The notes under the pieces are model-generated. The model was not told the origin of the DNA. It saw only the letters and a list, made by a program, of their open reading frames with translations, and did not search any database. Positions 3,963-61,080 of a stretch of 64,000 bases of DNA are shown here, piece by piece. Position 1 is the first letter of the stretch, and every line of letters begins with the position of its first letter. The position numbers and the translations under genes are program-made. The stretch lies in the sequence record NC_055733.1. The stretch is one strand, 5' to 3'.

Positions 3963-5861
3963 TTAGAACTCTGGATTCATTTTGCTGTGAGTGCCAGCGA
4001 CAAGAGCAAATGTCTTGGAGTATAGCCACTGACCAGTCAACTTTTTACGCCAGAACACACGACCGCTGGAAGTCTTGATAGTTTTCAGACTATCGGAAAT
4101 CTTAACGATTGTTCCACACGGGTAATAATCGCCGTTAAACGTCATGCTCACTTCATCACCAACTTTCGGCATTTCGATTACATCAAATCTAGGGCTTGCC
4201 CATTCGCCTTTGTCGATTGCCAGCAGATTTTTACCTTCGAATTCATCAACGATAGCTTGAGCATTCGCCAGTGACTTGAAATCCCAGCGAGAAACGATGT
4301 AGTGAGTACGATCAGCTTCGCGGGCAGCCATGGCGGCTTTGATATCGGTGTAGATTTCTTTGGTGTTCATATTGAAGTGCAGCATGATGTAATCCTCAGA
4401 AGTTGTTTTGTTTTGATGTGGCTATAGTATCAATAGCCACACCTAGCGTCAACTACTTTTTTCGAAAAATTAGTAATCTTTTCCATTTCGACCGGCGTGA
4501 TATATCATTTCTCGATATATCTTGATGCTCTTTTCATACGGATCTGGCACATTATCCATATCTCGATAGAACTCTCTGTTGTTCTTACTGTCTCTGATGT
4601 ATTTTCCGAGATAGCCACTGATTCCATTCAGATAGGTACGCATGGATTGCGTATTGAGCATTTCAGACGGAATTGTTTGGAGTAGTTCTTTCAGTTCGTT
4701 GAAACGTTCTACCACTTTCTGGTATTGTTCATCGAACTTAGAGAACTCGGCCAGATTCATACGAAGTCGATTCATGTGCCTAAGTTCAAACGCGAGTTCG
4801 CGAGAGATTACTCCAAATTTACTTGCAAAATCAGGATTCATTTGATCTCCCTTTTAAGATTCGCATTTCCATTTCAGCGCAAGCGACATTATAGAAATCA
4901 CGCTTTGCTTGAGCCAGTTCCGGAACAACTACGTTCATTCGATGCATATACAGATCATCAAGACGATTCAGAATCTTGACACCATCGCGAGACAGTTTAC
5001 CGTTTTCGGTCTGTGCCTGCTTTTCAATCTCAACTTCTCGAATGCATTCCAACTGATAATCCGCCGACATTTGCCGATCTTTCAGTCGCTTGTATACTTC
5101 CAAAATATCAATTTGCATTTTTCAATCCTATATACCACAGTTTACCAACACTGGTATGTTGATACCGTTCTTTATCCCACATACGGCGTCTAACGGCACT
5201 TGTGTGTTCATTGCCACCGCTTGTTTTGTCTAGCCAGCGCATCATGATACGGAAACAGAGTCCCACGTCCATTCTGAATTCGCAAGCCATTTCGTCATAC
5301 AGTTTATCATTTACATAAAGCCGACAATGATACTTGTTGTTGATCCTTGTCAGCTTGGTCTCGGTTTTTAGTTCGCTCAAATAAGACGCTCCCCAGTTAC
5401 AACAGTTTTACCACTTGAATAGTAGCCGTACTGTTTCCACTTTCTCATATTGCTAATCATGATATTCTTTGCCGCTTGTTCCGCTTTCTCCGCAGTATCA
5501 TAAGAAATAGTATAATCAACACGGGAAATACCTACAGCACATACGAACGGATAAAATTTCATGATTAGCTCCTCGATTTGATAAAGTGATTGTATCAGAG
5601 TCCAAACCGATACGCAATGTATTGTTTGTAAGAATCCAAAGAAATTACGTTTTTGTGCCAACTTACGTGCAGTTCAACACCAGCAACAGAATCAACACTA
5701 CCTAATTTGGTATCCCAGAAGTGAGTTTTCACTTTACGTTTCGGGCGCTCCAAAAAGAAATTTAAACTGCCGTCTTTGTCTTGCGCAACGTATGACCCGC
5801 AGAAGTTTTTGCCTTCTTTAACGAGAGATTCAACAACGATTTCCATGAATGACTTTTTCAT
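3963..5861 (-). CDS. Run of small hypothetical early ORFs (3963..4385, 4470..4841, 4831..5118, 5108..5380, 5595..5861)
   Basis: Tightly packed, with overlapping start/stop codons, RBSs and upstream promoters; no motifs recognised. Confidence 0.6.
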
Positions 5862-8203: not shown

Positions 8204-8931
8204 TTAGTTGATTGAGAATAAAGCAACAACAAGTATCAACATTATTATTAGGATCTTGTTGTCACCATGTTTACTTAACGTTTCCAGTATACGTCGCTCG
8301 ATTGCAACTGTCAACAACTTTTTCGCGATTGCTAACGGTATAACAAGAAACGTTAAGACTAGGAACTTATGTTGATTATACATTAGCTCCAGAAGATTGC
8401 AAACACTATCGTAAAAATCCATATCGTTACTATAGTTGACGGTCGATGAAGAAAAATCAAACCAATCGTCCTTACAGTAACTCCGTCATATAACGGCTAT
8501 ACGAGATTGTATAGTCAGAGCCAAATCCGGTGATATCTTCCCAGTCTTGACCCGGGTCCACTTTTACAATAAACCCGTAACCGAGAAATGGAATTTCATG
8601 ATTGGTTCCTAAACCGACAACGGTACATTTAAACTTTTGAACGTTGCCGAATATACCGGAGACGAGTTCAACTTCAACCCGATCTCCATTTTCAAACGGA
8701 TACATCGAATAGTCCTTGTTGTTTAGCTTTTTCAAAAAGCGGGTGATTGTCCGATATCGAGATATCAAGAGCTTTTATGATAAGACTAATGTCTTCCAAT
8801 GTCAACTCTTTTTTCGTGATTTTATGGGTTTTCGGGATGCGAATAGATCCAGTCAGACTATTGTCACCACGATGATACCAGTCTTCTCGTTGCTCGATCA
8901 GTTCGTCTTGATGGAGTGCGTCCTGACTCAT
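8204..8931 (-). CDS. Small hypothetical ORFs (8204..8422 membrane, 8472..8768, 8692..8931)
   Basis: Co-oriented and tightly packed. Confidence 0.5.
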
Positions 8932-9881
8932 TTGTTGATTTCCTCTACATAAACATCATAAAGGAAATTATCCCAGAATTCCTTGTCCACGGACTCGCGC
9001 ATACCGTTTTTCTTGGCAATAACGATTTCCGCTTCCACGTCATTCATGAGCTGTTCAAGATACGGATTAACTTCATCTACCAGATTACGATTTCCCAACT
9101 TAATGTCAAGAATAAATTCACGATGTTTCAACGGGAATTTCAGATCACCAGTCCGATAAATTTCAAGCAGTTGCTCGCCACCACGGACGGCATGAGAAAG
9201 TGCTTTCCAGTCCACACCGACTTCTTCTTTCGCCTTCTTAGCGCGATCACCGTACTCTTCCCAGATCTTCGTGATCTGTTGTTCAAACTCAGTGAACTTG
9301 ATTCCATAAAGATACTTGCGCCCCAGAACTTCATAGAAGCTCACCGGCTCGCCAGTTCGAGAGAGTTCACACCCAGGGAACGTGAATTCGTCGCTAGGAA
9401 GACGTCCAATAAAGCTGGACAGACGGTAGCCACGTTCGTCTTGTGGTACTGCTTTGACTACTGCCATAACTCGTTCCAGCGCGGCCAAGCGTGTGCCCTT
9501 AACGCCGTACTTGGTAGCTTGCTTACGACAGTAACCCAAGAATGCATCCATTTTTGTGGTATAGAACATCGAGCGATTTTCGTGGATATATTCCCAGTGC
9601 TTTGAAGTCTCCAGCAGTTGATTACTATGCAACATATCAATACACATAGTTTCGCCTTTGCTTGCGAGTCGCAAGAACTGGCGCAAGGACATCATTTCGG
9701 TATCGATATCATCAACGGTATTCTTGCCTTTGCCACCGGTCGATTCGTTGTAGACTTCTCGCCCACCCAGTACGATTTCTCTGGGAGTAGGGATAAAGAT
9801 TCCTTTATAATCTCGATCCGAAGTCGGGGTACTCAGCCCGTACAGGTGCGAGCCGAATACAGTTTTCATCAAAGTTTTCAT
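8928..9881 (-). CDS. nrdC.11: Pol-beta-superfamily nucleotidyltransferase (T4 NrdC.11/RlaP-like)
   Basis: GSHLYGLSTPTSDRDYKGIF (GS..G....SD.D) and the DWKALSHAVR motif. Confidence 0.85.
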   Translation of the reverse strand: MKTLMKTVFGSHLYGLSTPTSDRDYKGIFIPTPREIVLGGREVYNESTGGKGKNTVDDIDTEMMSLRQFLRLASKGETMCIDMLHSNQLLETSKHWEYIHENRSMFYTTKMDAFLGYCRKQATKYGVKGTRLAALERVMAVVKAVPQDERGYRLSSFIGRLPSDEFTFPGCELSRTGEPVSFYEVLGRKYLYGIKFTEFEQQITKIWEEYGDRAKKAKEEVGVDWKALSHAVRGGEQLLEIYRTGDLKFPLKHREFILDIKLGNRNLVDEVNPYLEQLMNDVEAEIVIAKKNGMRESVDKEFWDNFLYDVYVEEINK

Positions 9882-12337
9882 TCTGTTTCCTTAAAGAAAT
9901 CAACACTCTTTTTAATTACACTTGAGCTTTCTTTGTAGTAATCTACCACAAGTTCTTCGTCTCGTCCGAGTGCAAGCATGAATCGTTTTGCTTGACTAAC
10001 TGACATTGGTCCAGTAGTTCTTCCCCAGCCAAGAAAAACGAAATCTTTCTCTTGCTCATGAATTTGAATCCCATATTTGAGCATATTCTTATTCACAACG
10101 GGGAGCTTATTCAAAAATGAATCGCGATCCAGATAGTTCATAATCTTAACATAGATAATACGACACACGATTGAAGACAAAAACAAAACCAAAATAAAAA
10201 TCGCGTATTCTTTGGCACCAATTTCGATAATGTTCATTATTGCATTGCCTTCTGTTGATAGAGTTCAGCCAAGTTTTTGTTCAGTCGCTCGATTGCTTGT
10301 TCCAAAGTCTCAGCATTCGGATCATAGTTATCGGCAGTTGAATCGTAATGTGATTTTGATTTACCATGAGAAACATCCCAATGAGTGGAAGTAGTCTCAG
10401 GACAACGAGTCACATACAGATTTTGATCTGATTTAGACCGTAGATAAAACACTTTACACCCGGCCAGACCACTAGGCATTTGATATGCGTTCGTGGTCTC
10501 AGTTGTTACAGTATCGCATCCAATCAGAGCGAATGCAAGAGTAATTACGGCAAACTTTTTCATATTTCAAGCCGCTCCAGTACAGGTAAAATTGATTTGA
10601 AGACCATGATCATAAAGTCGTTGCTTCCGACCATGGCCCAGATCACAAAGTTAAGAACAATCAGTAACACCCAGATTGCATTTAATCCTTTCGCCACCAT
10701 ACGTCTTCGTCTCTCATGTCACTTGATGTATTGGATCTTATCACAACAGGACGAGGAGTTACAAGTGGATTTTTCATTATTTTTGTTTCTGTGCTTGCGT
10801 AAACAGGGATATATTTCTGGCTGAAATCTTGACCCTGTAGCATTAGCTCAAAGTTACGCAAAACGCTCTCCTTAGAGGGCGCACTAATGTCCTGATACCT
10901 ACTTGACATTAAACTGCCTGTACAGATACTTGCCAAAGATCAGTTTATGAACGTCGTTGGATTTCTCTGCCTGTTGCAGGATATCGTAAAATTCAGGAAT
11001 AGTCAATACTCTGGTTTGTTTTCCGTCTGAACTAACGAAATCATATCCGTGAGTGCTATCAGTCGGCACTTTTGGAATTCCGTAGTGGTCATAAAGGCGA
11101 ATAGTGATTCCTTTCTTTTGGAAAGCATCAACAATTTCATTGAAATGTTGTTTGATCCAAATACGTCGATTGGTTGCTTTTTCGCTACGACGCTTTTTGA
11201 TCAAGTCTGAGATCCAGATAGCAAAAGCGATAATTGCAACAAAAATAATTGTGATCATCGCGGCAACATAAGCCATTTTATTACCTCACAGTGAATAGAT
11301 CAGACGTAACCGGTTTATCGCTCAAAGGAACGGTGTGTTCTTCGAACTTTTCTCCGTATTCACATTTTCGCCAGAACAGCATTACCTCAGACGGATATAG
11401 ATCTCGGCTGATTCTTTCTCCGTTGGTAAACACGAAACGGACTTTGTGTACCTTTTTGAGCTGTACTCCATGTTTCATAAGATTGTGTTGGATGATATCC
11501 CAACTCTTTCTGATACGACGATAGGAGACAAACTCAACGATAGCACACATTAACAATATTGCGGCAAGAATAACTGCCGCAACGATTCCCATGATATCGA
11601 TTGTAGTCATTATACCTCTAGTTTGTAACAGTCAATAAACGCCTGTGCATTCTTATTAACAAAGTCCACGATTTTGTCACAAGCCAACTCACGGGACTTT
11701 TGTTTCCGCAGAACCGGAAACTTAACACCAGATTTCCACTTACAATCACCACAAAGAGATTCGAACTTGGTTTCACCGGCGTGAAGCATGAAATGCGCCC
11801 AACGATTGTTGAAAAACTCAAGATCAGAACAACCGATCTTAGCACCAACCATGATCACTTCCATGATTTCTTCGCCCAGAGATTTACGTGATCTAACTCG
11901 AACATACTCTACCAGACGCGGGTCAATCTTGGATTTTACTTGTTCTACCAGAGCTTGATTCATGATGTTTTCCTCAGAGTGATTGCTTTGTTTCAATGAG
12001 GCCATTATTACATGGCCTCCGATTTATGTCAAACTTATTTTTGAACTTTTTTCTGTTGCTTCTGGATTTCTTTCCAGACTTGCTTTTGCAGCTTTTCGCG
12101 GCAGCCGTTCTTGTTCATCAGATAATCGTTGGTGATCTTCTGTTGAGCGTGGAACCAGTGGGCAACAGCTTCACTAAGAATAACACGTTGTTCGGCTTCT
12201 GGGAGTTTCTTGAACTTCTCAATACCGAAGTATTTGATACGAGATACAACACCGTTTGTCATACGCTCCAGAGCATCACGATTCACATTAAACTGCTTTG
12301 CGATTGCGTCGAATTGTGCTTGAATTGCCATGTCCAT
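9878..12337 (-). CDS. Run of small hypothetical ORFs, several membrane or lipoprotein (e.g. 10237..10563 with lipobox LIGC)
   Basis: N-terminal TM helices in 9878..10237, 10899..11276 and 11281..11610; RBSs and promoters present. Confidence 0.55.
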
Positions 12338-22562: not shown

Positions 22563-22971
22563 AATAGCAGGTTAGATTGGCATGTCAAGCACCAAAACGA
22601 AAAGGCACCCGAAGGTGCCTTAATTTATCTTAACTGATCACTCATTATCCCAAGAACGTTTTACGTTACGTCCGTCGCGACGAGGACGAGACTTGTCTTT
22701 GGCTGGTTTTTCGATGTGCTCACGCTCTTCCATGATAGACTTGATCAAATCGTAATACTCGGCCAGATTATGAGCGCGTTCGCGATCTGCATCGGAACAA
22801 TCCTGTTGATCTGCATGATATTGTGCAGCAGCGCGAGACTTCAACACAGTTTTACGCAGTGCATTCAGACGTTCGGTAGTCAGATTGCGGAGTTTTTTCT
22901 CAGTTAGAAATTCCATCTTTGTTTCCTACAGGTGGTTTTAATACACTATCACTATCACTAATGGCAGATAT

Positions 22972-23093
22972 TGGCGGAGAAGGTGGGATTCGAACCCACG
23001 ACCAACAGTTTGATTTTGCAAGGGTTTGCGGTAAAGAATCTTAATCAGATTCCGCTTTTTGCGACTACTGCTCTACCACTGAGCTACTTCCCC
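22972..23093 (-). ncRNA. tRNA-like RNA E1 (122 nt) with a greatly expanded anticodon arm
   Basis: Acceptor GGGGAAG/CTTCTCC with G3-U70 and encoded CCA; canonical D arm GCTC-AGTGGTA-GAGC and T arm GTGGG-TTCGAAT-CCCAC; ~54 nt in place of the anticodon loop. Confidence 0.8.
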
Positions 23094-23101
23094 AAATTTT
23101 T

Positions 23102-23240
23102 AACAACACTATGCTGGCGGTCTGGGCCTCGAACCCAGATTACAGGCTTAACAGGCGAGTATTTATTGCGGAAAACATTCTTATCAGAATGAATTTTACA
23201 GTGTCCTACCAATTAGACGAACCGCCAGCATAATGTTGTT
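23102..23240 (-). ncRNA. tRNA-like RNA E2 with an insertion between the D arm and an Asn-like CTGTTAA loop
   Basis: Acceptor TGGCGGT/ACCGCCA extended by ~13 bp; D arm GTCT-AATTGGT-AGGAC; T arm CTGGG-TTCGAGG-CCCAG. Confidence 0.75.
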
Positions 23241-23241
23241 T

Positions 23242-23365
23242 GTTGTAGCGATACTGGATTCGAACCAGTGACGTTTCTCGATGTGCCCACACTTAACGGA
23301 ATCGAACCGTTCTCGATACTTCTCTGCGATCAGAGGCGTTCTCCCGCTGAACTAATCGCGACAAC
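23242..23365 (-). ncRNA. tRNA-like RNA E3 with two T-psi-C arms
   Basis: D arm GTTC-AGCGGGA-GAAC; T arms AACGG-TTCGATT-CCGTT and ACTGG-TTCGAAT-CCAGT; terminal stem closes the molecule. Confidence 0.75.
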
Positions 23366-23381
23366 AAAACAATCTTAACAC

Positions 23382-23801
23382 TTATTTCTTAGAGGGTAAA
23401 CCTTTTTCGTTGAAATTTTTCACTGCCAGTTTGAACTTCAAACGAATCAACGTTTCCCGATTCGGATTTACTTTCATGATCTTGGCGTTACCGCGATGAA
23501 TCAGCGCGTAAACATCCTCGATCTGATTGCGAGCGATAAGCTCCGCGAACTCCTCACTATATCGAATCTGAGTAGTGAAGTCGATAAACTCCTCACCTGA
23601 AATCAGATCAACAGAACGAGTTACGGCACCATCATACATGTATTCCGTGTTTACAACAACTCGAACATTATCAGCACCGTCGAACGAGATCATTGGAATA
23701 CCAAGAGGACGTTTGTATGAAAGTGACAACAGACGATCTTTCTCTTTCTGTTCTTCTTGTTCTTTACGCTTTGCTTCCGTGCCACTTGCCTTCTTCGACA
23801 A
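23382..23801 (-). CDS. Hypothetical protein
   Basis: 139-aa co-oriented ORF. Confidence 0.55.
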   Translation of the reverse strand: MSKKASGTEAKRKEQEEQKEKDRLLSLSYKRPLGIPMISFDGADNVRVVVNTEYMYDGAVTRSVDLISGEEFIDFTTQIRYSEEFAELIARNQIEDVYALIHRGNAKIMKVNPNRETLIRLKFKLAVKNFNEKGLPSKK

Positions 23802-25451: not shown

Positions 25452-26888
25452 TTAGAAATCGATACCGACGTAACGGTCGCTCATGATCTTGTCGAGCATG
25501 ATTTGCATCGGGTTAAACTCTTTCGCACTCAGGATTGTCTCCATGATTGCAGGACTAAAACCAGAAACAAGAGCAGTGCCTTGATCATCTTTGGTCACCG
25601 GATTGTTAGTCGGGCGCGGGCAAAGATTCCAGAACACCAGTTTCGGCATTTCGTAACCAGCGTCGCGGTAAGTCTGACGAATCACCTCAAAGTTGGTAGG
25701 CTCACGGTCACGCATACGATAGTAACCACTATAGCCACCATCAGCAACGTTGAATTCCATGTCAGACAAGACAACCAACATAGTCGGCATATCTTCTTGC
25801 GGAACTCGATTGCGTACAGCGCGATCAAGAATGATCTTGAATGCACCAGCAAAGTTGGTAGAGCCACCCCACGGAGCGCGTCTCAGATGATTCACCATGC
25901 TTTGAAGATCGTCGCCTTTCTCTTTGATGTTGTAGAACTCAGGATTATCATCGAAGGTAATCACTTCGTTCCGGAACACACCGCGCGAACGTTCGCCGAT
26001 GTACAGACCCAGAGAAATCGCGATGTCCATAGCAGACAAGCCAGCAACAGCGGTCGGAGTGCTCATAGAGCCGGAAACGTCAACCATTGCGATTACGTTT
26101 TCAGTAGAGCCAGCCATCCAGTCGCGTTGTGCTTTCCACTGTGCATCAGCAGCAACGGAAGAACCAGTACGCAGGGATTTGATCATGTCATACGGATAAA
26201 CCGCAGCAGCGTTGATCTTAGCCTCACCCTTTTTCAAGGACTCAAGGTAAGCAACATAATGCTCATTCGCGTTTTTCAGGAATGCTTTCTGATAACGAGC
26301 AGAAGCAACAGACGGCAGTTTATCGAACTCAATACCGTCCCACTGACGAGCACACATCTTTTGTTCAACGGTGTTCGACATACGGACGATAGTGTGACGA
26401 TATTCTTTAGCAGTCATTCGCATAGCTTTGGCCAGAATACCGGCTTCTTTGCCCTTTCGAGGTGCCCACTTTGCAGCAAGACCGTTTTGCTTGGTCATGA
26501 TTGCATCAACCATGATAGCCACAGCAGCGTCCTGAATCGGAGAATTGAACATTGCTACCACGTCTTTGAAGCGACCGATTTCAGGAGTGTTCATCAGAAC
26601 TACGGTGGCGTCAACAGGGTGACGATGCGCAAGGACTTTCAGCAGGCGGATGAATTGTTCACGTTCACCGGCACCACCGCGAATATCGCGAGCCCATTGC
26701 AGAATGCGAACAGCCCAGTCAGGAGACTCGGTATAAGCATCAACAAACATCTGAGTCAGATCTTTCCCGCGAGAGGAACCAATCTGAGAAAACAGATTCA
26801 GACACTTGTCGCCAGTGGTGTAGTTAGTGACAGCACCGTTAGCAGTGCGGGTTTGAGCTTGTACCATTGCATTCATAAAATTAGACAC
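25452..26888 (-). CDS. DUF2828-family TROVE/Ro60-like protein with C-terminal vWA (MIDAS) domain
   Basis: ARDIRGGAGER, LAAKWAPR, IEFDKLPSVA, MIDAS DVSGSM, WGGSTNF, SDMEF and FWNL motifs. Start GTG 26888 after GAGG. Confidence 0.8.
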   Translation of the reverse strand: MSNFMNAMVQAQTRTANGAVTNYTTGDKCLNLFSQIGSSRGKDLTQMFVDAYTESPDWAVRILQWARDIRGGAGEREQFIRLLKVLAHRHPVDATVVLMNTPEIGRFKDVVAMFNSPIQDAAVAIMVDAIMTKQNGLAAKWAPRKGKEAGILAKAMRMTAKEYRHTIVRMSNTVEQKMCARQWDGIEFDKLPSVASARYQKAFLKNANEHYVAYLESLKKGEAKINAAAVYPYDMIKSLRTGSSVAADAQWKAQRDWMAGSTENVIAMVDVSGSMSTPTAVAGLSAMDIAISLGLYIGERSRGVFRNEVITFDDNPEFYNIKEKGDDLQSMVNHLRRAPWGGSTNFAGAFKIILDRAVRNRVPQEDMPTMLVVLSDMEFNVADGGYSGYYRMRDREPTNFEVIRQTYRDAGYEMPKLVFWNLCPRPTNNPVTKDDQGTALVSGFSPAIMETILSAKEFNPMQIMLDKIMSDRYVGIDF

Positions 26889-40667: not shown

Positions 40668-40759
40668 AAAAATAATGCGCGTCCGGAACTCTCTTGTGTA
40701 CATTGGACTTTATGAGTGTCAGTTCCGACGCGACTTTTTCTTTTGTGTAAAACACATTG

Positions 40760-40861
40760 CCGAGGATACTGGATTCGAACCAGTGACCCACTGCTTCTTC
40801 TGTACTCTCGTTGGAAAGCACAGGAGAAGGCAGTTGTTCTATCCCACTGAACTAATCCCCG
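40760..40861 (-). tRNA. tRNA-Arg(TCT)-like gene with a 28-nt insertion in the anticodon loop
   Basis: Canonical acceptor, D and T arms; ACTGC-CTTCT-[28 nt]-AA-GCAGT. Confidence 0.8.
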
Positions 40862-40885
40862 TCAATGTGTTCTAATAGACTGGAA

Positions 40886-41380
40886 TCAAGGACTCCAGTC
40901 AAAATTTAAATCTTCCATGTATTCTTCGAGTATACATAGCTTGTAATCGATTGTAAAGCTTTTTGGCAAAACAAAATCAGGACCAACATCATAACTAGCG
41001 GTAATGTGTGGATGATAGTCAGGATAATCATGAGTTGCACCATGTTTCTCTCTGATCTCTTTGTGTCTAGCACCGAACCATGGGTCGGTGAGCTTCAACA
41101 CCAAAGCACGTTTGCCGCTTTGAGTTTCAAAGATATCAGGTATCATGACACCTTGCAACACTTTATCGATCTTACCACTTGCCTGAAACTCAGGCAAGTA
41201 TTTTCTTGAGTAGATCAAGGTAGTGTGTAGCTTATCATAGGGGACAAGATTAGGTATCCCCATTTCCCTACATCTTCGAACAATTGCCATTGCAGTGCGC
41301 GGCTTGTAACGTACTGCTACATAAGTGCCGCGCGTGTCTTGCTTATTCGCTTCTGTGAATTCAGAAAACGACTTTAACAT
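40886..41380 (-). CDS. 57B: gp57B / Acb1-family 2H phosphoesterase (anti-CBASS nuclease family)
   Basis: Two HxT motifs (LHTTL, PHITASY) and position next to 57A. Confidence 0.88.
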   Translation of the reverse strand: MLKSFSEFTEANKQDTRGTYVAVRYKPRTAMAIVRRCREMGIPNLVPYDKLHTTLIYSRKYLPEFQASGKIDKVLQGVMIPDIFETQSGKRALVLKLTDPWFGARHKEIREKHGATHDYPDYHPHITASYDVGPDFVLPKSFTIDYKLCILEEYMEDLNFDWSP

Positions 41381-46153: not shown

Positions 46154-47141
46154 TTATGCATTCCTGATTCCACGTACCATTTGTTTAGTTCTGTTATAGA
46201 ACGACTCTACGGAGTTGATCAAGTTATCTTTACCGGCATGTTCAGCATGAATCATTGTGCTAACGGTAAATTCTACCTCGAACGTCGCTACCTGATTATT
46301 GTTTTCGTAATCCAGTTGAACTTCGCCAACTCGAACTGGAAAACACCCGTCACTATGAACAACGGAAGTCATTACTCCGCGTCTGTTTAAAGTCACGATA
46401 TCAATGTCCCGAGCGTAATTGCTATAAAAGCCGAATGTACCTTCTTGGATTATGAATCGAGTTCATCCAAGTTAGGAACCAAATACGTTCCGCGTAATCG
46501 GAAGAGCAATAGAATGTCATTCTGATCGGATCAACCGTTCTATTTCGAACTTCGGTAAACGGCTTTCTTTCGTTGTAGTTTGATTGTGTATCAAAGCTAA
46601 CACCAGGCAAGCTTACCGATTTTACCATAAGCGCCAGATCTCTGTTTACGTCATAATCAGACCCCAAGAATCCGTCAAGCAGTTCACCTGCACCCGGAAT
46701 CATTCTCACTAGAGTTGGGTCAATCGCGCCCATAATATTTTTGATCTTCGGACTCAATAACTTTTTGCCCTGATTCATCGCGATATCTTGAATACGATGC
46801 CAACTAAAATTTGTTCCTCCGAAGAATCCACCAGTTGATTTGTTAATCGCATCGCCAATTCCACCAATAGTCTCGCCCAGTGGACCCAAATGTCCCAAAA
46901 TGCCGTCAGCGGAAGCAACGGATTTAAAATCACCAAATCGAACAAGAAACGTATTCGATCTTGCTAAATCTTTATTTTCAATCACTCGCATAAAACGCGC
47001 AAAGTCCGGAGTAGAATTCGGATCATCTGCTAATTTATCCGCAATATAATCAATACCGTCAGATAATGCCGTACTCGCCATTCCAGGAATTTTACCCGGA
47101 ATCTCTTTAATATAATTCGCGGCTGTATCTAATAAGCCCAT
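46154..47141 (-). CDS. 54: Baseplate-tail tube initiator gp54 (frameshifted near 46440)
   Basis: KDLARSN.F.V, MVKSVSLPG, R.VDPIRMTF; continues in another frame as GTFGFYSNYARDIDI...FPVRVGEVQLDYE.NNQVATFEVEF. Confidence 0.85.
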
Positions 47142-60094: not shown

Positions 60095-61080
60095 ATGTCT
60101 TCTATTATCTATCGTTCAATTGTAACAAGTAAGTTCAGGACAGAAAACCTCCTGAACTTTTATAACTCGATTGGCGATACGGCAGACAAACATACGATTT
60201 ACGCGACATTTGGCCGCCCAGATAAATGGGCGGACAATGAGACGGATTCTAAGTTTGCTCCACCGTATCCAGATGATTCAATCGAGGGAATCGCTGATGT
60301 ATGGTCCCGTATGTTGGGTGCTGTAAAAATCCAGCAAGCTTTATTGCGTCCTGTTGTTCCTCGTGACGACTGGGGAGATCAGCGATTTACTGATCCGTTT
60401 ATTCATCATATCGGTGATATTGTTGTAACAAACAGTGCTCCCTATAATAGAACAGAGATTGGTTCTGGGTGGATGATTTATCGTTGCGTTGATGTTCCTA
60501 ACGTCGGACAATGTAGTATTAAAAGCATTGTTGAAAAGGGCGAGTGTATGAAAATCGGAGGTAAGTGGACACCTAGCGTGAATCGCTTTTGCCTGTTGGT
60601 AAGAGTGACGGCGTTGATATGAAAGACGGATATATCTGGGAATATCTATATACGATTCCGCCCGATGTGGCAATTAACGAATGCACAAACGAGCATATTG
60701 TTGTGCCGACTCCACAGGAATTGATTTCTAATCCAACTCGTTGGGGTTATCAACATGTATTGAAGTGGTATCCCAATAAATACGATGTTATCTATAGAAT
60801 GAAATGTCATACGTTGCGATTCCGAGCGTACATTGACAGTATTTATTTTAAAGAAGCGTCTATGGTAGGTAACAAAGGTTTCCGTCAAATGAGTGTTATT
60901 CTTGATCCTATTTTGGTGAAAAATAACCCAGCAAGCCCTGATGTTAAAGCGACGGGTGCAAACTATTTGCCAAGTCAACTTGAAAGACATTCGGGCGAAA
61001 TGATTTATATGGAAAACAGACAGCCTATTATTCGTTCGCGAGATCAAACGGAAGAGTTCAACTTAGTATTTGAGTTTTAA
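60095..61080 (+). CDS. 8: Baseplate wedge protein gp8 (frameshifted near 60580)
   Basis: IYRSIVTSKFRTENLLNFY; YRCVDVP; DGYIWEYLYTIPPDV; SGEMIYMENRQPIIRS.DQTEE. Confidence 0.92.

Follow-up and report, generated by a model that had tools for sequence, protein, structure and literature searches.

Introduction

To our knowledge, the tRNA introns of bacteria are self-splicing group I introns, and the tRNA introns that are spliced by protein enzymes belong to archaea and eukaryotes. Here we describe a 28-nucleotide (nt) hairpin that interrupts the tRNA-Arg(UCU) gene of Aeromonas phage Ah1 (Straboviridae, Cinqassovirus) and that may be a micro-intron of another kind, cut out by host RNase III and sealed by a phage RNA ligase. 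The gene lies in a stretch of 64,000 nt from sequence record NC_055733.1, called the window below; window coordinates are those of the NC_055733 record minus 62000, and a 1-kb query around the gene was 100% identical to that record.

The group I introns of bacterial tRNAs (cyanobacterial tRNA-Leu(UAA), tRNA-Arg(CCU) and tRNA-fMet) also interrupt the anticodon loop, including that of tRNA-Leu(UAA), but they are self-splicing ribozymes of ~200-300 nt. The Ah1 insert has 28 nt, and a search of Rfam over it (E <= 1) returned tRNA as the sole match and no intron family. Archaeal and eukaryotic tRNA introns, which are processed by EndA or TSEN together with RtcB or Trl1, share with the phage insert a short, non-self-splicing sequence in the anticodon loop that is partly paired with the anticodon, and they need an endonuclease and a ligase. 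They differ in position and geometry: the phage insert lies between tRNA positions 36 and 37 (36|37) rather than at 37/38, it lacks the 3-4-3 bulge-helix-bulge, and the predicted cuts fall within a duplex with a 2-nt 3' stagger. The archaeal and eukaryotic pathways also yield cyclic phosphate and 5'-hydroxyl ends, whereas the ends expected from the phage inserts are 5'-phosphate and 3'-hydroxyl, in a bacterial host without EndA.

Two systems of bacteria and their phages offer other likenesses. Intervening sequences (IVSs) are excised by RNase III from bacterial 23S rRNA, for example from helix 25 and helix 45 in Salmonella. Like the phage inserts, they are short hairpins at the tip of a functional helix that lengthen the duplex for RNase III and occur sporadically among close relatives, with removal at the RNA level. 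However, the rRNA pieces stay unjoined in a working ribosome, whereas a tRNA cut at 36/37 would need sealing; moreover, the IVSs are ~90-150 nt long and cellular, and the phage tRNA inserts are 24-30 nt long and confined to phages. In the T4 tRNA repair system (PrrC, Pnkp and Rnl1), a break in the anticodon loop is resealed by phage RNA ligase 1, and Ah1 has both rnlA and pseT. The T4 enzymes deal with a single 33/34 nick inflicted by the host in its own tRNA-Lys, whereas in Ah1 two programmed cuts would take 28 nt out of a phage precursor.

Phage tRNAs with inserts have been described in Lak megaphages, whose "enigmatic" tRNA introns were believed by the authors to be the first found in phages (Devoto et al., bioRxiv 10.1101/356790; PMC6784885). 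As in Ah1, these are anticodon-loop inserts in phage tRNAs that are not group I introns and have no known mechanism; they are identical across cohorts. Unlike the Ah1 insert, they are ~90 nt or longer, some are tRNA-like, they occur in Phe, Gly, Thr and Tyr tRNAs, and no common structural rule has been reported for them. We considered the Lak introns as members of the 24-30 nt class and rejected them on their length (~90 nt) and different structure. A full-text literature search, with subscription-only papers beyond reach, returned no description of a class of 24-30 nt inserts at 36|37. Should the mechanism be confirmed, the pathway would be categorically new.

Results

An interrupted tRNA-Arg(UCU) gene in phage Ah1

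The interrupted gene occupies 102 nt on the minus strand (40760..40861), with C1 at 40861 and the discriminator G73 at 40760; CCA is not encoded. Read from 40861 to 40760, it is CGGGGAU-UA-GUUC-AGUGGGAUA-GAAC-A-ACUGC-CUUCU-[28 nt]-AA-GCAGU-GGGUC-ACUGG-UUCGAAU-CCAGU-AUCCUCG-G, a cloverleaf with an acceptor stem of CGGGGAT/ATCCTCG, a D arm of GTTC/GAAC and a T arm of ACTGG-TTCGAAT-CCAGT. The Rfam tRNA model (RF00005) matched the gene over its full length (model positions 1-71; 53.7 bits, E = 1.8e-09, gathering score 29). The predicted precursor has a minimum free energy (MFE) of -40.9 kcal/mol (z = -3.48), and none of 200 shuffled sequences was equally stable.

Alignment with the uninterrupted tRNA-Arg(tct) of phage phiAS5 defines the parts of the gene. 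The 5' exon (40825..40861, minus strand) comprises tRNA positions 1-36 and ends in C32-U33-U34-C35-U36, with the anticodon UCU at 40827..40825. The 3' exon (40760..40796, minus strand) comprises positions 37-73 and begins with A37-A38. Between them lies the intervening hairpin CCUGUGCUUUCCAACGAGAGUACAGAAG (40797..40824, minus strand), in which a CAAC loop joins a 5' arm of 11 nt to a 3' arm of 13 nt; the terminal AG of the latter pairs with U36 and C35. The loop CUUCUAA arises solely after 40797-40824 is removed, and it is the intronless phiAS5 orthologue that is called tRNA-Arg(tct). An initial annotation made from the letters alone had proposed a discrete, structured 28-nt insert in this tRNA, and its coordinates, arms and insert limits all proved correct.

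Splicing of the proposed kind would explain why annotation pipelines miss or mislabel such genes. In Ah1, ARAGORN with default settings missed the interrupted gene and listed 23 other tRNAs with none for Arg, in agreement with the initial count of canonical tRNAs; in its intron mode, which had been suggested as a check, the program detected tRNA-Arg(UCU). The Ah1 record carries no annotation for the gene. Its Aeh1 counterpart is annotated as a 105-nt "tRNA-Glu (UUC)" and that of PX29 as a two-piece "tRNA-Lys", and the inserted copies of the other relatives are unannotated. In an earlier survey, the Aeh1 copy was placed under Glu(UUC) or pseudogenes, and no Arg(UCU) was given for Aeh1 (Nolan et al., 2006).

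Codon usage and sequence conservation indicate that Ah1 probably needs this tRNA. In 171 long open reading frames (ORFs) of Ah1, which has 42% G+C, AGA makes up 20.5% of Arg codons and is the second most used of them. The Aeromonas host is G+C-rich, and AGA is rare there. In the alignment of relatives, the exons keep a perfect cloverleaf with compensatory changes, and retain A20 and C35, despite strong divergence; the D loop of Ah1, GGAUA, puts A at position 20. In E. coli, A20 and C35 are identity elements for arginyl-tRNA synthetase.

Intronless relatives fix the insert at 36|37

Synteny of the locus, with gp57B on its upstream side and two tRNA-Leu genes on its downstream side, extends to Aeh1, avDM12, PX29, AsFcp_1, AsFcp_2, AsFcp_4, phiAS5 and phiWae14. 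Counting Ah1, eight of the nine Aeromonas phages carry a 26-28 nt insert at the identical phosphodiester. Because the avDM12 gene is identical to that of Ah1 and the inserts of the relatives share this phosphodiester, the insert is neither a chance sequence nor an assembly error. The ninth phage, phiAS5, has an uninterrupted 75-nt tRNA-Arg(tct) whose exons are 89-92% identical to those of PX29, and the sole single excision that converts the interrupted genes to the phiAS5 form removes the bases between U36 and A37. We label loci by L-numbers (L001-L009 are tRNA-Arg loci, with L009 that of phiWae14; others include metagenomic contigs from IMG/VR). A second, independent pair, the metagenomic locus L031 and cyanophage S-RIM8, likewise shows exact absence of the insert at 36|37. 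These intronless alleles place the intron at 36|37 and not at the canonical 37/38. The initial annotation had taken the insert to be one base short of the archaeal geometry through a single-base loss; the AA concerned is A37-A38 of the tRNA loop, which is invariant in all homologues, including the intronless ones. Comparison with relatives, proposed as a test for a decaying pseudogene, showed instead that the inserts are conserved at the same site and that their pairing covaries.

Change, by evolution or exchange, is faster in the tRNA-Arg exons than in the insert and flanks. Between Ah1 and Aeh1, the two flanks are 96% and 87% identical and the insert 96%, compared with 68% and 73% for the exons. 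PX29 and AsFcp4 have flanks of 94% and 96% identity, an insert of 57% and exons of 62% each. Between phiAS5 and phiWae14 the upstream flank is 99% identical, the former has no insert and the latter one of 26 nt, and the exons are 62% and 59% identical. Two loci, L098 and L031, have identical 26-nt inserts and similar flanks, and their exons are ~50% different. The pattern points to movement of the insert from one tRNA allele to another, or else to a tRNA body that is subject to diversifying pressure or is often replaced as a cassette. In phiWae14 a 246-amino-acid ORF (L009:2124-2864, minus strand) that is absent from the other phages lies between the tRNA-Arg and tRNA-Leu genes and might be mobile; it was suspected to encode a homing endonuclease and gave no Pfam match.

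The same class of insert interrupts four phage tRNAs

Pattern scans of IMG/VR contigs, with ARAGORN in intron mode and folding as a filter, uncovered further interrupted tRNA-Arg(UCU) genes, whose inserts are unrelated in sequence to those of the Aeromonas phages. The carriers are tRNA clusters on diverse contigs of 6-170 kb, and inserts homologous in kind are now known from eight independently sequenced phages and ~30 metagenomic contigs. Inserts of the same build appeared unprompted in loci fetched for other reasons, in a class II tRNA-Leu(UAA) (L052) and a tRNA-Glu(UUC) (L119). Targeted scans then gave five tRNA-Leu(UAA) families, with all seven matches real, and three tRNA-Lys(UUU) families, with three of five matches real. 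The inserts recognized in total fall into 18 families, unrelated to one another, and interrupt tRNA-Arg(UCU), Leu(UAA), Lys(UUU) and Glu(UUC).

All 18 families have the insert at 36|37 and a length of 24-30 nt, and all affected tRNAs share the loop C32-U33-U34-N35-N36-A37-A38. The final dinucleotide of the insert complements nucleotides 35-36: AG for CU, UU for AA, AA for UU and GA for UC. As the scan patterns imposed these two bases, the Leu and Arg scans were repeated without the constraint and returned no interrupted tRNA with another ending. The six families found without an end constraint (four Aeromonas types, Leu_L052 and Glu_L119) obey the rule. One further insert, in L046, has an internal direct repeat and ends in GC; it does not obey the rule and was set aside. 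Beyond the bases that pair with the anticodon loop, the inserts share no sequence motif, although position 1 of the insert is recurrently a pyrimidine and position 2 recurrently lies in a purine-purine mismatch.

When the Leu pattern was run against 185,579 bacterial and archaeal species (one genome each), the single match was a chance one and not a tRNA. For the Leu(UAA) pattern tested, the device is thus virus-specific. BLAST searches for isolate relatives of L038 and L031 gave short tRNA matches only.

Two other RNAs were noted on the metagenomic contigs. The tRNA-like gene at L126:5145-5271 encodes CCA and combines a good acceptor stem with D and T arms; its anticodon region contains an insert of ~50 nt, of a different size class from the 24-30 nt hairpins. 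On a metagenomic phage contig, ~5 kb separate an interrupted tRNA-Arg from a GOLLD RNA (L032:4861-5269; Rfam RF02032, 328.7 bits).

Covariation supports a continuous helix with a bulged C32

Folds of all precursors share one architecture. The 5-base-pair (bp) anticodon stem is followed by a bulged C32 and by the pairs U33:A38 and U34:A37; N35 and N36 pair with the last two bases of the insert, and the helix runs on into the insert. The result is one continuous helix of ~19-21 bp, closed by an insert loop of 3-6 nt, in which the anticodon loop is fully sequestered in all families. In Ah1 the extended anticodon arm (40790..40834, minus strand; -23.6 kcal/mol) has the 5-bp stem, the bulged C32, 4 bp (U33-U36 with A38, A37, G-1 and A-2), one C.A mismatch, 10 bp and a tetraloop, a near-continuous duplex of ~19 bp.

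We counted pairs in ungapped arms anchored at both ends of the insert (positions i1, i2 and so on from its 5' end, and i-1, i-2 and so on from its 3' end), with the loop centre removed; MAFFT alignment of full precursors mis-registers the inserts and was not used for the counts. In the continuous-helix register, 87.3% of 306 cells were paired, a value reached by none of 500 shuffles, and controls slid out of register gave at most 46%. Nucleotide 35 pairs with i-1 in 18/18 families (CG 9, AU 5, UA 4) and nucleotide 36 with i-2 in 18/18 (UA 12, AU 5, CG 1). Further in, i1:i-3 is paired in 17/18 (CG 10, UA 6, GC 1), and i3:i-5 in 18/18 with four pair types. In the bulge-helix-bulge register, which shares the inner helix, the counts are 9/18 for C32:i-1, 13/18 for U33:i-2 and 6/18 for C35:i-4, and compensatory changes are absent. 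Covariation therefore supports the continuous helix with a bulged C32 over the bulge-helix-bulge, the geometry first proposed for Ah1. The pairings then drawn, CTTC/GAAG and TGTGC/GTACA, are present in the Ah1 copy, but the comparative data favour the other register. The Ah1 sequence, with CUUCU opposite AGAAGAA, is compatible with either register, which explains the earlier reading.

The dimensions of the hairpin are narrowly set. The predicted 5' boundary lies after U36 and the 3' boundary before A37, both inside the duplex and offset by 2 bp, which would leave a 2-nt 3' overhang. The 5' arm of the insert has 10-12 nt; among the 18 tabulated sequences the 3' arm is longer by two in 11 and by one in seven with internal asymmetry. 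In the MFE folds, Leu_L052 and Leu_L117 have seven positions and a larger loop, and the other 16 have 10-12 positions between the predicted cut and the loop. For Ah1 the sum is 11 + 4 + 11 + 2 = 28 nt. The duplex, at 19-21 bp in total, has the length of an RNase III substrate (PMC1540722).

Proposed excision by RNase III and phage RNA ligase

We propose, with a probability of about 45%, that host RNase III excises the 28-nt insert as a micro-intron and that phage RNA ligase then joins the tRNA halves. In this scheme, the gene would encode a precursor of the phage's only tRNA-Arg(UCU), and the precursor would have no anticodon loop, with U33-U34 paired to A38-A37 and C35-U36 to the last two bases of the insert. 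A double-strand-specific endonuclease, most likely host RNase III, would cleave the two strands at points 2 bp apart, one after U36 and the other before A37. The cuts would free a hairpin of ~11 bp with a 2-nt 3' overhang and leave the tRNA broken in the anticodon loop, with 3'-hydroxyl and 5'-phosphate ends. The tRNA-specific RNA ligase 1 of the phage (RnlA), or possibly RnlB, would then seal the break to give the normal loop CUUCUAA.

Host RNase III is proposed because the ~11-bp hairpin, the boundaries within a duplex and the 2-nt 3' stagger are hallmarks of that enzyme. ATP-dependent RNA ligases can join ends of the RNase III type directly. In T4 Rnl1, the T4_Rnl1_C domain guides the enzyme to tRNAs broken in the anticodon loop, and Ah1 encodes an RNA ligase 1 with this tRNA-specific C-terminal domain: its RnlA (gene at Ah1 187155-188324, outside the window) matched the Pfam families RNA_lig_T4_1 (1.4e-25) and T4_Rnl1_C (7.5e-41). 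Ah1 also encodes RnlB, PseT and a CCA-adding enzyme. Exhaustive digestion by RNase III yields products of 11-15 bp, and the loss of one bp from 11 costs the E. coli enzyme ~50-fold in reactivity (Pertzev and Nicholson; PMC1540722). The predicted excised hairpin, ~11 bp and a loop, matches the minimal E. coli substrate defined there. Six-frame translations of the Ah1 genome and all retrieved loci (1.2 Mb) contained no RNase III signature motif, and all-against-all blastp of 761 ORFs flanking insert-bearing loci found no protein family common to at least three groups; both results fit a nuclease supplied by the host.

Several points weigh against this proposal. Removal of the insert and the positions of the cuts are deduced from sequence, and the identities of the nuclease and the ligase are proposed. 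At i1:i-3, which adjoins the 5' cut, 10/18 families have C:G, a catalytic antideterminant in E. coli, often with a G.G, G.A or A.A mismatch after it (six families); other families have U:A or, as in Ah1, the mismatch C.A. In several families the helix above the cut has just 10 positions, one below the E. coli minimum, and the tRNA side of the duplex carries the bulged C32. The known repair junction of T4 Rnl1 is 33/34, not 36/37. Searches (tblastn) with Ah1 RnlA, RnlB, PseT, CCA enzyme, gp57B, gp150 and NrdC.11 against the flanks of the metagenomic carriers gave no matches, in flanks too short for a conclusion. Lastly, a 24-tRNA cluster on the L086 contig holds an ordinary tRNA-Arg(tct) (4148-4220) as well as an interrupted copy (11459-11562), so that the interrupted tRNA-Arg(UCU) is not always indispensable.

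Two other gene products in the window were noted for a label or a match that suggests RNA repair. The RefSeq "RNA ligase" gp57B, encoded next to the tRNA (40886-41380, minus strand), was rejected as a splicing candidate: it is an Acb1 anti-CBASS 2H phosphoesterase, a cyclic-nucleotide phosphodiesterase (Pfam PF23474, 1.9e-35), and it matches the 2'-5' RNA ligase superfamily only weakly, at a score that does not reach the threshold. Ah1 gp118 (NrdC.11; 8928-9881, minus strand) matches Pfam RlaP (2.4e-13), an RNA repair pathway nucleotidyltransferase of the DNA polymerase beta family.

Alternative explanations

The initial annotation had offered a micro-intron spliced by some nuclease and a phage RNA ligase, and a micro-intron remains the best reading in view of the RnlA, RnlB and PseT encoded by Ah1, with removal still a deduction. 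It is possible, although unlikely, that a nuclease other than RNase III makes the cuts and that PseT heals and RnlA seals the ends, as in T4 tRNA repair. T4 Pnkp and Rnl1 act on anticodon-loop breaks, Ah1 has an RlaP-type nucleotidyltransferase in addition to PseT, RnlA and RnlB, and a specific enzyme might recognize the inserts by their recurrent pyrimidine (position 1) and purine-purine mismatch (position 2). Nucleases of this sort cut single-stranded RNA, however, and both predicted scissile bonds lie inside a conserved duplex; the inserts have no other common motif, no conserved neighbouring gene was found in the flanks, and the narrow ~11-bp size of the hairpin would go unexplained. We also doubt that the insert is kept, either as part of a tRNA-shaped decoy or inhibitor of tRNA-targeting defence nucleases with a masked anticodon, as an RNase III sponge, or as a shield of the gene, at the DNA level, from homing endonucleases aimed at the sequence of the anticodon arm. 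This would account for the sequestered anticodon loop in every family and for the intact tRNA-Arg(UCU) beside the interrupted one in L086. The tRNA-Arg locus is moreover a hot spot of cassette swapping (exons 59-73% and flanks 87-99% identical), reminiscent of homing-endonuclease marker exclusion, and the four affected tRNAs have U-rich loops, with tRNA-Lys(UUU) a known target of anticodon nucleases. Yet the decoy is less likely because AGA accounts for a fifth of Ah1 Arg codons and there is no other tRNA-Arg: if the insert stayed in place, Ah1, Aeh1, PX29 and their relatives would be without tRNA-Arg(UCU), although AGA ranks second among their Arg codons, and phiAS5 retains an intact copy at the same locus. 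With its constant hairpin size and an end that is exactly complementary to nucleotides 35-36 across four tRNA species, the insert looks more like a processing signal than a mask, and a role in DNA would still require removal from the RNA for a working tRNA.

Of the remaining explanations, an archaeal-type bulge-helix-bulge intron cut by an EndA-like endonuclease appears the least probable. A CUUC/G(A/G)AG helix between bulges of 3 and 2 nt can be drawn in Ah1, Aeh1, L019 and the L032 family, but the register fails in most families (C35:i-4 and C32:i-1, above) and breaks entirely in Leu, Lys and Glu. Its second bulge has 2 nt instead of 3 and is the conserved A37-A38, and cleavage by the bulge-helix-bulge rule would put a pyrimidine (C or U) at position 37 and not reproduce the intronless allele. 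We know of no bacterium with EndA, the host is a bacterium, and no EndA is annotated in the whole Ah1 genome, where annotation was consulted and not every hypothetical protein was profiled. A decaying pseudogene, a sequencing artefact or a self-splicing ribozyme is highly improbable. Assembly errors do occur in the Ah1 record, as its many split genes attest (60_1/60_2, 54_1/2, 8_1/2, 23_1/2), but an artefact or pseudogene is hard to reconcile with the identical avDM12 gene and the inserts in independently sequenced phages and metagenomes, and a pseudogene would not be expected to covary in both cloverleaf and insert. At 28 nt, the element is far too small for a group I or II intron or any known small ribozyme, and Rfam recognized only tRNA.

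Other features of the window

The gene is bordered by complementary flanks, ACACAUUG on the 5' side (40863..40870, minus strand) and CAAUGUGU on the 3' side (40752..40759, minus strand), through which the acceptor stem would gain 8 bp in the precursor. There are just two copies of these flanks, both beside the tRNA, and as they are identical in all nine Aeromonas phages they have no support from covariation. Upstream of the tRNA by ~68 nt, a consensus scan gave a sigma-70-like match, TTTACA-17-TATACT (40929..40957, minus strand; 10/12 positions), which is not evidence of function. The interval between tRNA-Arg and tRNA-Leu(CAA), at 40670-40735 (minus strand), contains a possible terminator or processing hairpin, in which the arms of a 13-bp inverted repeat, GUCGCGUCGGAAC ... 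GUUCCGGACGCGC, are separated by ~31 nt, with a U-rich run after the second arm.

Beyond the 23 canonical tRNAs, three conserved tRNA-like elements stand in tandem at 22940-23400 (minus strand). In each, an acceptor stem, a D arm and a T arm with GGTTCGA are present, and a structured block of ~45-55 nt replaces the anticodon loop. Element 3 (22975-23093, minus strand) scores 54.3 bits with the Rfam tRNA model and has G3:U70 and an encoded CCA; element 1 (23248-23359, minus strand) scores 25.9 bits and has D and T arms in common with the interrupted tRNA-Arg. The elements are 84-98% conserved in all Aeh1-like phages, where they are annotated variously as tRNA-Val, Leu, Ala or OTHER, and their internal hairpin shows compensatory changes in phiAS5. 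They could be the counterparts of stable RNAs C and D of phage T4. Nearby, gp150 (25452-26888, minus strand; 478 amino acids), annotated as "RNA-binding protein", contains DUF2828, DUF7788 and a VWA domain in an architecture that resembles Ro/TROVE; it may be a partner of these tRNA-like RNAs.

Many T4-like essential genes of Ah1 (60, 54, 8, wac and 23) are annotated in two pieces, for example 54_1/54_2 at 46154-47141 and 8_1/8_2 at 60095-61080. The split genes are consistent with single-base indel errors in the assembly; the tRNA-Arg insert is not among them.

Discussion

The hairpin at 36|37 adds a third kind of tRNA insert to the group I introns and to the enzyme-spliced introns of archaea and eukaryotes: it measures 24-30 nt, sits at a non-canonical position, follows a simple structural rule and occurs in four tRNA species of unrelated phages. 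Somewhat more tentatively than for the Ah1 insert itself, we suggest that phages have a protein-dependent tRNA splicing of their own, in which an ~11-bp hairpin at 36|37 of C-U-U-N-N-A-A loops would make the anticodon arm a substrate of host RNase III, this enzyme would excise the hairpin and Rnl1 or Rnl2 would rejoin the tRNA, distinct from both group I and EndA/bulge-helix-bulge splicing.

If this is true, it would be a new RNA processing pathway, one that could be assembled from two commercially available enzymes. It would also give the T4-type RNA ligases, so far explained solely by the repair of host-inflicted damage, a routine and constitutive physiological substrate. In practice, phage tRNA inventories and analyses of codon compensation undercount interrupted tRNAs. 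The maturation of a key rare-codon tRNA would depend on the state of the infected cell, and phages may gate the decoders of AGA, UUA, AAA and GAA in this way for timing, for evasion of anticodon nucleases or for immunity of the genes to homing endonucleases.

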